A stretch of 64,000 nt of DNA, taken from contig CM106585.1 of the NCBI GenBank assembly GCA_048013815.1, positions 8,060,001 to 8,124,000 on the forward strand. The letters are read 5' to 3'. Below, in pieces: positions 39,701 through 47,220 of this stretch (the first letter of the stretch is position 1; every line of letters starts with the position of its first letter). This DNA is from Setoptus koraiensis. Taxonomy: Eukaryota > Animalia > Arthropoda. The notes beneath the pieces were generated by a model. The model did not search any database. It was not told the origin of the DNA and saw only the letters and a program-made list of their open reading frames with translations. Position numbers and translations under genes: made by a program.

Positions 39701-40063
39701 GGTTTTATTGTGCGATTGAAGCCAATCGACGAGTTCATCCAGCCAGTCAATTTCGTTTTCACTGAAACAGCTCGCCTATCCGATAGTTGCCGATCGAAAG
39801 AGATCGAATCGAAAGAAAACAATTCAAACGAAAATCAAAATGCCCCCCATCAAACTGGCCCGTTCGATTGAACCTGTTGCCGAGTGATTCCAAACAATTT
39901 AATTATCCACCTAAAAGCCGAAGGCTCAGTGAAACAGTCACTTGACAAGTCGTTGCTGTAAAGCAAATCAATTGTTTCACTCCGTCGCATCACCAACATT
40001 GAACAGTAAGTTTAAAGCAGTTATTTTCAGGTGATCTCACTTTCGAGAACAAAAAGCTCAAAG

Positions 40064-43023
40064 ATGGGACTCGACATTGTTGATATATTGCTCATTTTCT
40101 GGACATTGGTGGCATCAGGCACTTTTGTGCTGGGCAATGCCTATGAGAATTATTTAAATCAACAGAAACTTTTGAAAAAGAAAAACAATCAATTGAAAGG
40201 CGCTCCAGACAACCTAAGAAATCATCAATACGGACAATCCAATTATGACCAGTCTAAAAGCTACAATGACTATCAATCGTCTACAACAAAAACGGCAACA
40301 ACCAATGAATTTTATCATCAGCAACACAAATCGAACAATTACTCAGATAATAATAATCAGAGTTATCAGCCAAGCGATGCCAACAAATTCAGAGACAATA
40401 TATATGCAAATGATGGTTCGAAAGGCGATTATCATGGATCGGGAACAATAACTTATCGTCGAGCTCAGGAACCAGACAGCTCGATACCAACTGCAACGGG
40501 ATTTAATAATGACTGCGTGGAATGGATCAACAAAATCCTGTATCTGTTCTACAGCTCAGACCAAAACTCTAAATACATACAGATTATATCTGAGAGTTTA
40601 TGTAGATCACTAAATGAAAAATTGTCCAATTTACAGAGTTCGCAACAGTTGTCTTCTTTGGTGTCCAACATCAGTGATGGCCAAAATAAGAATTGTAGCA
40701 ATTTCAAGCTGGCATTTCGCGATGTTGTTCGCGAGGCCAGCTCGAAACCTGAACTGACCAACGTGAGAACAGAAACAGAATCTAACAGAAGTGTAAGCAC
40801 TATCTGTAAGATATACAACCGTCGTCTGGTACTGGATCTGACTGTGACAATTGTACACCGGCAGAACCGTCAGCAATTGAATTCTAAAAGTAACATAATC
40901 AATGAAACTAGCCGGGCCTCACTATACGATGGCTATGATCCCCTCTATCACGGTCAGGCCTATCAAGATCACCAGGCTCAACAGCAACAAAATGAACAGC
41001 AAGAGACACTGTTGTACGAATTATATTTGGAAAATCTCGAGGGAAAATTGAAAAGCGTGTCGATATTGCAAGATAAATTGGTGATAGTCCAATTTATGGA
41101 GAGACCCGACACAAAGATAACGCTCAAACCAAAATACGATTCTTACCAGACAATGAAACAGCAGGCTACCTTAAATGAGGATGCCATTATTAATTTAGTG
41201 ATGCAAACATTCACTCAAGTTGTTGTTGATTTGTATTTTGGTGACGATCCCGATTTTCCGCGTTTTAACATGTCGGCACACAAGCCGCCCCATAGTGGCA
41301 ATAGCACTCTGAGAAGTGGCCAATTGATGCAACAGGCATCAATTGATTCGGGCGGCCAGCAACAGACACGAAAGCAGATAAAGCAAGACTTTTTCAGTGT
41401 TCTCACCAACAAACACAATAAACACCATTCGGCGGAACAAAAAGAGAAAAAGATATTCATCAAGGTGAATAAGGCGATCAATATTAATTACAACAACAAC
41501 GTCTATTGTCTAATTGAGGTGGACGAGCCATCGCAACGCTTCCACACTGCCATTAAACAGGGCAGCGAACCTGTTTGGGACGAGCATTTTATATTTAATC
41601 TGAATGATAAATCAAATGAAATGCTTTTCGAACTGTGGGACGGTGTTCCTGCCTTGAAAAAGAAAGATCACGATCGCAAGAGGGACAAATTCTTGGGTAT
41701 GGCCATTGTTAGCATGGATGAATTGCAAAAGAATCCCGTTCAGAAACAATTGTTAGAGTTACAATCTCGTCCGATGGAATCAGATAATATCGCCGGTCAG
41801 TTGTATGTTGAATTTTTGTTTATGGAACATTCATCTTCCACAAGTCGACAAGTTGCCTCACAATTTCAAAAAGGCGACGTTGTGTCAATAGACAGAAAAG
41901 TAACACCATCCGGTTACGTGATAACCACCACTACAATAACTAAACCCAATCCAGCGGCTAACACAAGTGACGACAAACAACAACAATTAGGCCGACAACA
42001 GGTAATTATCATGAGATCTGATTGATTGAAATCGAGCGAAAGACAATAATCATATTATATGAATACACGAGCATATATTAACTGTTCTCATTCTGTATCC
42101 TCTTGTCCCACAATCAGCTAAGCCCTAATGACCCCGAGAGAACCTCGTCGAGAGCACCATCTTCTATCAGCACCACACCAAGTGATCTGGAAATGGCCAA
42201 TCATTATATGGATGATCAATCGTCTGATATGGAGATAAGTGTACCGATTCACAATAGCCAGACAGCAAGAAGATCGCGCCCAACTCAGAGGTCAAACTCT
42301 ATTTTGCGTGCCATCAAAAAAAGATTTAGCTTTTCTAAGACACGCTCTAAATCGGTGGAGCAACGTTTCGGAAATGACTCGAGAACCGGCGCTCAAACTG
42401 GTACTTCGTCCGCATCGGTTAGTAGGGCCTCGTCTATTAATTCTCACACCGACAGAGCTAGATCGGTGCCAGCTTTTGCTAGAGATCAACAACAAAATCT
42501 GCCCTCAATTGTTATTAATCCTGGCAGAGGATCATCACTTGACGATGCCACCAGCGATTATACCTATACTCATCCTAATAGTCAGCTTATCATTGAAAAT
42601 GATTCAGATGGTGTGTTGCGTCATTATTTAATTCCGCCCAATCTAGCAAACAAGAAGAGCAAATGGGGCAAGAAGGGTACGAAGATTCATCTTTACAATG
42701 AGCATCAATTTATCGCCACCCATTTATCTAGTCCCACTAGTTGCCATTTATGTGGTAGAGTATTTTCTCGTAGGCCAGGCAAACAGGGTTATGTTTGCAG
42801 AAATTGTCAAGCTATATCACACAAACAATGTCATGTTAAAATAGATCATCAATGTCCGTTTGCAACTAGAAATACCATGATACTAGAATATATGCCCACT
42901 AATAGTAGTCGTTCTAGCAGCAAGAGCCGCAAAAATAACAAAACCAATAATGATAACGAAAGAAAAGATTCGCTGACACCTGATAATAGACAGGCATTGC
43001 GAAGAGAAAGTAGGGACTTTTGA
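40064..43023 (+). CDS. C2CD2/TMEM24-like membrane-contact protein (TM, SMP-like region, C2, C-terminal C1 zinc finger); join(40064..42001,42118..43023)
   Basis: N-terminal TM (IVDILLIFWTLVASGTFVLG), CVEWINKIL (SMP start), C2 (YCLIEVDEPSQRFHT..PVWDEHFIF..LFELWD..DKFLGMAIV) and C1 (HQFIATH..CHLC..KQGYVCRNC..HKQC..C). 116-nt phase-0 intron. Confidence 0.8.
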
Positions 43024-44870: not shown

Positions 44871-46433
44871 CTATCTACTGTCTATTACTCTACTATTGTC
44901 TAGGAAAATTAATTTCACGCTAAGCAGCATGAGACTACAAAAAGCTAGCTGTGCAGCAAATAAACCAGCGAAGAATACCAATCTAGCTCGTTGTTCATCA
45001 TATATATCGCTGCAATCGATAGGTATGATTAGCCACGTGCCAAACCAAGATAGTCCAGATATGCATACGTAGGTCAAGTTTAAATAGGAATACAATAAAT
45101 AGAATAATGTAAATAATGAATAGCAGATAATATACTTGTAAGATTGTTTGTTGCTACTGGGCCAATCACATAGTATCTCTAAGTAGCCAACAGTGATATC
45201 TTGTTGGCAACCGTTGTCTAGAATTTCTGTTGATCCTATTCGTGAATGATGATCATTATAGTTATTGTTAGTTGGTAAGCTGAGATATCTCTTGGTGGTT
45301 TGTTTGTTGTTGACATTGACTATGCTAATGAGAGAAACAATTAGCGCGATATTAATTATCACTAGTAGATTTGCCTCTGTTAATGTTATTTCCAAGCTGA
45401 AAATGGTCTCATATTCAAAAATCACAAGTAGAGTACCATTGACAGATATTAGCCATAACTCATATAATCTGTATAGAAGATCACGTTTATACCTAACGTG
45501 TGGTAAGTTGAAATGATTTGCCTCGGAATTTCGTTGGTAGCTTTTTTATTAAAAAGGGTAGAAAGATAAAATTTTCACTGTTACAAACTAGAATGTGTAC
45601 TGAATATGATGATATCAATGAAGGATGGCATATGGACCATTTTGAGCACATTTTCTCACTCTATGTTTAGTAGACTGAAAAGTGTTGTGGACAACATTTT
45701 CGTCTATTTTTTTGACACAATATTTGATTCTCTTTATAAGAGAATCAATGGAATTTGGTCTATTGCGACCTGACCAAACCATCCGATCGAGATAGACCCA
45801 AAAATCTTCAATAGGCCTTGCCTGAGGAAGATTTGTGGGGTTCCTCTCGAGCGGCACAACATTGATGTTGTTGTCACGATAAAACTCTTGTGTTAAACGA
45901 GAGTAGTGTGACTTGGCTTTATCAGGCCAAAAATAATAATTGCCATCTGAATGGTGTTCTTCTATAAATTTGACTAATCTTTTCAAACATTGGTTGATAT
46001 AAATCTCCGAATTGACCGCATTTTTTCCTCGATGAATGTACACCTCCGAGATTCCTTTTGGAGAGCCGGCCAACCATATCATCATTTTCGGGGTGAACTT
46101 CTCACTCTCTCTGTATTTGACGGCATCGGGAATCTCGGCAGAGTTGCTGGTGTGATAATGTTGATGAGTTTTATGTGAAGCACACACAAAAAAACAAAAG
46201 CGAATCATTTCAACTTACCACACGTTAGTATCCAGGTATCTAGTTCTCGAGGCCGTTGTGGCCAGACTATGCAAATACTTGATTAGAAATACTATTATAG
46301 GTGGATTAAATAGTACACTGGCAGCCACCAAGTAACTTATTGATTGACTAGCAAAATAGCAGGTGACTGGCATCAATATAATAACAAAAAGCCTGGCCAG
46401 CGTTAGACTAGCGGTTTTACATGCATTGTCCAT
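44871..46433 (-). CDS. Orphan multi-pass membrane protein split by a transposon-derived intron; join complement(46219..46433,44871..45492), 278 aa
   Basis: Exon 1 (215 nt, ATG 46433) ends TG|GTAAGT inside the right TIR. Exon 2 (622 nt) starts after TTAG at the end of the left TIR. The join gives TGG TAT AAA CGT and an open frame to TAG at 44871. Both halves are TM-rich. Confidence 0.65.
45493..46228 (-). mobile_element. Internally deleted IS630-Tc1-mariner DNA transposon, DD37E type, 736 bp
   Basis: Perfect 26-bp TIRs CTAACGTGTGGTAAGTTGAAATGATT (45493-45518 and 46203-46228). TA flanks the right end (46229-30), and TA lies at 45490-91, one base off the left end. Internal transposase remnant present. 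Confidence 0.92.
45615..46208 (-). pseudogene. N-terminally truncated DD37E transposase (197-codon open frame)
   Basis: KF.PKMMIWLAGSPKG, YFWPDKAKSHY and NPTNLPQARPIEDFW, with exactly 37 residues between WPD Asp and PIE Glu. The HTH DNA-binding region and the first catalytic Asp are missing. Confidence 0.88.
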
Positions 46434-46531: not shown

Positions 46532-46581
46532 ATGTAGTAGTTAATGAGATTCCGGTATGTAGTAGTAAATGAGATTCCGGT
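46532..46581. repeat. 25-bp tandem duplication
   Basis: ATGTAGTAGTTAATGAGATTCCGGT followed by ATGTAGTAGTAAATGAGATTCCGGT (1 mismatch). Confidence 0.9.
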
Positions 46582-46739
46582 GGTAAGAGTTACATGTAAT
46601 AAATATGATATGTACGACCATAATAAATACCATAATAAATAAATAAATAATAATAATAACAATAAAAACGAACACACTGCTACAGCTGGAATTTTGTCAG
46701 CGCTATTTGGCAATAGTGCGAAAGCGTGTCGTCGGAACG

Positions 46740-47220
46740 GGTTTGTATCATTTCAACGACAGACCAGGTTCAACGGCGGCTGCGTTCAACGACAAATCTA
46801 AACAACGACAAAGGTACGATTCGACGAAAATCATTTCACCGAAAAACATTTCAACGAGAATCCGAACACAGAAAAATTGGAACATCGACAATAGACCACC
46901 GTGTGGGAGTCTGCCAAGTTCTTTGGGCGTAGTTCCAGAAAAAGACGCAAGGGGCACTCGCATTAGGCAAAAAGTACATTGAGGAGACTGGGGTGTCTCG
47001 ATGAATGTTGCGATTTTTCTTCTTTTTTTTTCTTGTTGATTTATTTTTCGATTGCTCATTCGATCTCGGTATACCAGCAATGCTGTGCCCGTGAACGAGC
47101 CGGGTAAAGGCTCAAGTCGACGGCAGAACAGTCGTTGAAGTGAGCTCTCGTCGAGAAGCATTTCGTTGTTATGAATCTGTCGATGAAGGGAGTGTCGTTG
47201 GAATGAAGTTTCGGTGTCGC
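46740..47220. mobile_element. MITE-like element with inverted arrays of subterminal repeats (TTCAACGAC-like)
   Basis: About 7 degenerate TTCAACGAC copies at 14-19-bp spacing (46751-46858) and about 7 inverted GTCGTTGAA-like copies (47116-47218). Exact termini and TSD not resolved. Confidence 0.5.

Follow-up and report, generated by a model that had tools for sequence, protein, structure and literature searches.

A DD37E Tc1/mariner remnant with candidate splice sites in a membrane-protein gene of Setoptus koraiensis

Spliced transposons and introners

Splicing of Tc1 insertions and of maize Ds/dSpm insertions from transcripts is established. In C. elegans, Tc1 is said to be removed from most mutant pre-mRNAs via splice sites in or near its ends, a result attributed to Rushforth and Anderson (1996), who reportedly demonstrated this splicing by RNA analysis and found it to be often imprecise. 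The insertion described here resembles the C. elegans Tc1 insertions in its superfamily, its TA target, its position in coding sequence and the presence of candidate splice sites in or beside its inverted ends. It differs from them in that its layout would leave exactly +6 nt in the product and in that it is known here from sequence.

Introners provide the second point of comparison. In Micromonas, the introner element gives one splice site while the duplicated target gives the other (PMC11282704). Introners are mostly non-autonomous, although some families include copies with ORFs (PMC12130899), and introner surveys list only two animal groups in which they occur (PMC9860276). Similar to the introners of Micromonas and Aureococcus, the present element is a non-autonomous DNA transposon with inverted ends, which would supply one splice site, while the duplicated target helps to form the other. 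However, the Micromonas and Aureococcus introners form families of numerous, nearly identical introns that are spread over many genes and are proven to be spliced, whereas a single insertion of a low-copy family is concerned here, whose acceptor depends upon a lucky host G. In addition, half of a transposase ORF is retained here, while most introners carry none (PMC12130899).

In the tunicate Fritillaria borealis, the account of Henriet et al. 2019 given in PMC11282704 describes thousands of transposon-derived introns with non-GT-AG borders and an altered spliceosome. As far as that account goes, the likeness lies in introns born from transposons, in a compact animal genome and in the pairing of inverted ends, which brings the intron ends close to each other (PMC11282704); unlike F. 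borealis, the locus described here is a single case with canonical GT-AG borders. In an eriophyoid mite genome, 84% of the genes are intronless, transposons make up 1.5% and intron gain is minimal (PMC7738191), and the genome studied here looks similarly intron-stripped. In the window (i.e., the whole 64-kb stretch of DNA that was analysed), ORFs are long and uninterrupted, and introns are few and short. The domains found in the window are Sec7-PH, C1, C2 and a borderline CUB, and its RFX protein is nearest to chordate clusters, a gene content indicative of an animal. The Rfam and tRNA scans of the 64-kb window were blank.

The element and its host gene

The features of the element are the following, positions being those of the window.

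45496-46225, minus strand: element proper, 730 bp, oriented like the host gene, its border set by a second copy in run X8
46200-46225, minus strand: 5′ terminal inverted repeat (gene strand), which holds the candidate donor G/GTAAGT
45496-45521, minus strand: 3′ terminal inverted repeat (gene strand), which reads ...ACTTACCACACGT
46226-46227: TA target-site duplication, upstream copy
45494-45495: TA target-site duplication, downstream copy
45615-46208, minus strand: transposase remnant ORF, 197 codons, alignable with full-length relatives at the protein level
46172-46182: approximate internal-deletion breakpoint, where other copies in X2 and X8 cease to match the one in the window

Read along the gene strand, the insertion appears as ..GGATAC-TA-[ACGTGTGG...CCACACGT]-TA-GGTATAAA.. 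and thus has TA on both sides of 45496-46225, the target duplication of Tc1/mariner elements, as well as the terminal inverted repeats of that superfamily. The sequence-only reading had described an element of 736 bp with perfect 26-bp terminal inverted repeats. The inverted-repeat element is real, but its length is 730 bp, the earlier figure having taken in 3 + 3 host and target-duplication letters, and the perfect stretch within the element is 23 nt. The element-only end repeats are 26 nt long with 1 mismatch, and the inverted arms with the host and duplication letters included (45493-45521 and 46200-46228) are 29 nt long, also with 1 mismatch. A contig from run X8, which represents another locus, matches the arm through the TA at 46227 and then carries a C where the window has a G. 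Because the X8 copy keeps the TA and then differs from the window flank, the outer C and G are host letters, and the target of the insertion is a TA within a palindromic CTAG host site. The 23-nt arm core has 2 matches in the 64-kb window, both at these arms, against 0 expected by chance. No further copies of the end repeat were found in the 64-kb window with mismatches allowed, a looser 15-nt pattern returning the same 2 sites, and the end-repeat motif is absent from L001, a contig of a related genome, and from L002.

The 197-codon ORF within the element is 62% identical to P0002 (341 aa) and 42% identical to P0003 (345 aa), and matches Pfam DDE_3 weakly (E 5.8e-4, 20.2 bits vs a curated cut-off of 28.6). 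Homology begins at about codon 15 and corresponds to residues ~155-341 of the full-length relatives (alignment A2). The spacing from the second D to the E is exactly 37 residues in the remnant, in P0002 and in P0003, so that the label DD37E previously given to the element was correct. Neither the DNA-binding domain nor the first catalytic D is left, and the remnant hence lacks the complete triad of an autonomous copy. Judged by this anatomy, the element is an internally deleted, non-autonomous Tc1/mariner DD37E copy in which only the C-terminal half of the transposase is kept. It shares with the DD37E (maT-type) Tc1/mariner group the TA duplication, the short inverted ends and the 37-residue D-E spacing, and departs from it by the two deleted parts. 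The deletion was mapped at the protein level and from loose contig ends in X2 and X8; an exact contig look-up with the remnant ORF matched no contigs.

The element interrupts a minus-strand ORF, as had been proposed, and leaves two pieces of it in the window.

46218-46433, minus strand: 5′ part of the host ORF, 72 codons, with its ATG at 46433
44871-45491, minus strand: 3′ part of the host ORF, open for 206 codons up to its stop

The 5′ part codes for two hydrophobic helices followed by the beginning of a basic loop, and the final 8 nt of this part (46225-46218) belong to the element. With the 206-aa piece as the query, a single protein was retrieved, P0001, which has 269 aa, is 89% identical and spans both halves. 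A homology search with the 72-aa piece gave no match. In contig L001, P0001 is encoded by one uninterrupted 269-codon ORF, which lies beside Sld5, the same neighbour as in the window, and the DNA alignment (A1) shows the orthologue to be continuous through the insertion site. It had been suggested that the orthologous locus be searched for an empty site and that the reading would fail if the two halves were separate genes in orthologues. With both halves in one ORF and the same neighbour, the L001 locus is, on this alignment, an empty site, and the gene was formerly continuous. Exact contig look-ups with the 72-aa upstream ORF and with the Sld5 protein returned no contigs. In the related genome, the gene that follows Sld5 (L001 3629-5248) encodes a muHD-domain protein.

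Comparison with the orthologue by the Nei-Gojobori method gave a dN/dS of 0.10 upstream of the insertion and 0.095 downstream of it, with a dS of 0.54. The dN/dS of Sld5 is 0.046. By this measure, the host gene is under purifying selection, with a dN/dS of about 0.10. An exhaustive profile-free search yielded 20 cluster representatives of the host protein, down to E 1.6e-18. The relatives are hydrophobic multi-pass proteins, the remote ones are single ORFs, and the position of the proposed intron is not shared with them. In the family alignment, the element lies in the loop after the second helix, the length of which varies greatly. No Pfam family was found for the host protein and nine of its relatives, and an Atlas search of the host protein gave weak matches (<=0.80) to unnamed clusters.

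Two further peculiarities of the host sequence were seen around the insertion. With the element set aside, 16 nt in the window (46226-46238 and 45491-45493) stand against 1 nt in L001.

46228-46238, minus strand: upstream part of this surplus, from alignment A1 with the orthologue

The 15-nt surplus at the insertion site corresponds to 5 codons in frame and is bounded by a direct repeat of ACTAG. It was considered as an excision footprint and rejected, as the footprint expected of these element ends is different. In addition, two tandem 25-nt units, 96% alike, are located at 46532-46581, ~100-150 nt upstream of the host ATG.

Splice geometry and competing sites

The GTAAGT donor proposed at 46218 was confirmed in the 5′ end repeat, the cut of the candidate site G/GTAAGT falling between 46219 and 46218, 7 nt inside the element. 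Without splicing, the ORF (46433-46215) ends after 72 codons at the TAA at 46217-46215, and joining 46219 to 45492 gives an open frame of 278 codons, as had both been read before; the frame-restoring GT..AG geometry is hence real. Removal of 46218..45493 (726 nt) would leave +6 nt and turn Thr-Arg into Thr-Asn-Val-Trp. The acceptor AG had been ascribed to the end of the element, a view that does not hold, since the AG (45494-45493) consists of the A of the target duplication and the flanking host G. Because this AG needs a host G after the duplicated TA, the acceptor can work only at TA-G targets. The +6 result holds for any TA-G target and, at CTAG, for both orientations. A direct reading of the sequence indicates that, in one codon phase out of three, the retained letters would make a TAA stop. 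Introner splice sites come from the element with or without its target duplication, and in this the locus agrees with them, its donor lying in the repeat. The branch site and pyrimidine stretch that the proposed acceptor needs would come from the 3′ repeat.

The native introns used for comparison are three ORF-extending intron models in the window.

Native introns: 125, 140 and 116 nt, with donors GTAATT, GTGAGT and GTAATT, respectively, and all with CAG acceptors
Length: native introns 116-140 nt, proposed intron 726 nt
Acceptor: native introns CAG, proposed intron TAG
Pyrimidines in the last 30 nt: native introns 67-77%, proposed intron 53%

The proposed donor is no worse a match to the consensus than the three native donors, and the proposed intron is 5-6 times as long as the native introns. 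Its acceptor was initially thought to resemble the native ones, but it is weaker in both its terminal triplet and its pyrimidine content. The 116-nt GTAATT..CAG intron (42002-42117) joins the C2-domain and C1-domain ORFs (40031-43023) into a 958-codon frame, and these two ORFs are probably one gene.

More than 40 AGs lie between the donor and the proposed terminal acceptor, one of which deserves its own line.

46147-46148, minus strand: an internal AG that competes as acceptor, ..CACACCAG; it lies 72 nt past the donor and downstream of a T-rich tract

With the AG at 46147 (GTAAGT..CACACCAG), exon 1 and the transposase remnant would become one frame of 248 codons. Another AG, at 45541, keeps the frame of the downstream part and would give 294 codons. 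In the predicted RNA fold (MFE -219.6 kcal/mol, z -7.1), the end repeats pair and form a long stem over the donor and acceptor region. This stem could block U1 or, alternatively, draw the intron's ends towards each other, as proposed for other transposon-derived introns (PMC11282704).

Age of the insertion and state of the allele

Sequencing runs were compared as assembled contigs of low depth and uncertain library type. In the contigs of four such runs, the 46218>45493 junction was not found, which, given their depth and library type, constitutes weak evidence against splicing. Similarly, no spliced product was found in the protein collections. X9, the only run flagged as possibly RNA, contains one 262-nt contig (46486-46226), which runs a single letter beyond the TA and ends short of the proposed donor, and has no coverage of the downstream part.

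The same contigs bear on the presence of the insertion in other samples. A contig of X2, which derives from another sample and study, crosses the right junction (45442-45584) without differences, with a word depth of 47.7 vs 116.2 for the adjoining flank. The left-flank contigs of X2 and X9 stop at the upstream TA (46226-46227), and this TA is where contigs of X8, X2 and X9 break off or diverge. The depth and the break in X2 suggest that several alleles were pooled in this sample, the insertion being one of them. In X7, the flank is 99.7% identical to the window up to 45489 and then runs into a related but different element end (ACGTATGGTAAGTAATAATT), which contains GGTAAGT and is joined at a TA (45488-45489), 6 bp from the window junction. 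The X7 junction would have no AG at its border, and the next AG would give an in-frame stop. The occurrence of two different insertions within 6 bp suggests a target hot spot and the persistence of disrupted alleles, and the insertion in the window is probably polymorphic.

Given the 1 mismatch in the end repeats and a remnant ORF that is still open, the insertion is recent on the scale of the lineage dS of 0.54. It is in fact too young for the intact downstream frame to say anything on function after insertion, and the intact ORF was for this reason rejected as a sign of continued function. In X2, the end repeats have only some 2-3 times the depth of the single-copy flanks, and the 64-kb window contains one copy of the element. 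The word “introner”, applied to the element in the sequence-only reading, hence does not fit, because the family is of low copy number in both respects and many intron-forming copies are not seen.

The insertion is real and recent, and we consider it rather probable that the locus is a probably polymorphic insertion allele, which is at most partly rescued by splicing. A non-autonomous, deleted DD37E element would have landed at the TA of a CTAG, where a conserved gene for a multi-pass membrane protein, natively without introns, encodes a loop, and the present state would be a mutant allele and not an established intron. Unspliced RNA would give a protein that ends after 72 residues, and some splicing probably starts from the strong end-repeat donor. 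The likely outcome would be mixed and include the in-frame +6 nt product from the terminal AG, products of internal AGs and unspliced RNA, with a rescue of the gene that would be partial at best. This reading is based on the anatomy of the element, its DD37E spacing and lost N-terminal half, the empty orthologous site and the dN/dS of 0.10. It also draws on the youth of the insertion, the X2 depth and the breaks at the TA, the second element end in X7 and the lack of the junction in four runs, as well as on the shorter native introns with better acceptors, the many internal AGs and the pairing of the end repeats over the splice sites. Against it speak a donor at least as consensus-like as the three native ones and an exact, in-frame +6 nt product of the terminal AG in a loop of variable length. 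In addition, the presence of the insertion in a strongly conserved gene, in samples of four studies, hints that the allele is tolerated.

A nascent transposon-born intron, with efficient, precise and in-frame removal of the 726 nt and a working protein, is plausible, although we hold it to be less likely than not. Here, U1 would bind the GTAAGT of the end repeat and the spliceosome would use the A of the target duplication together with the host G. The consensus donor, the AG at the boundary and the 278-codon frame would all fit, the variable loop length in the family implies that two extra residues should be tolerated, the gene is intact and under purifying selection, and Tc1 is, as mentioned above, said to be removed by splicing in C. 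elegans. The Micromonas introners similarly take one splice site from the element and the other from the duplicated target (PMC11282704). However, neither the junction in any of the four runs nor a spliced product in the protein collections was found, the acceptor is weaker than the native ones in an intron of 5-6 times the native length, internal AGs compete, a 26-29 bp stem can bury both sites, and the youth of the insertion deprives the intact ORF of weight. Only tentatively, then, may the locus be pictured as an intron caught at birth in an animal genome that has shed most of its introns, with its parent family still readable and an empty site in the sister lineage. If spliced precisely, it would be a rare datable animal example of a DNA transposon becoming an intron, with the parent family, target site, empty orthologous site and protein consequence all known; if not spliced, it would be an ordinary insertional mutation in the host gene. 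Splicing of the donor to the internal AG at 46147, with a 72-nt intron, would instead attach the 72 host residues to the remnant of the transposase catalytic core and leave the host gene unrestored. This outcome we regard as improbable: the acceptor ..CACACCAG is like the native ..CAACACCAG and follows a T-rich tract, the 248 codons are in frame and short introns are the native rule, but 72 nt is less than all three native introns seen, and an in-frame outcome has a one-in-three chance of arising by accident. Finally, a mis-assembly of repeats could have placed the element in the gene, as further copies exist elsewhere in the genome and its ends coincide with contig breaks; this artefact is hardly credible in view of the X2 contig, from another sample and study, that crosses the right junction (45442-45584) without differences and of the clean TA duplication that flanks the element.

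Three observations concern the sequence upstream of the host gene. The interval 46632-46676 was treated as a repeat in the read comparison. In the upstream intergenic region, an X2 contig skips 34 nt at 46733-46768 (GG..AG), which looks like an indel polymorphism. Further upstream, the X2 word depth reaches ~1865 at 47000-47099 vs ~100 nearby, with several loose ends at 47025-47067, and a high-copy repeat appears to begin at about 47000-47099.
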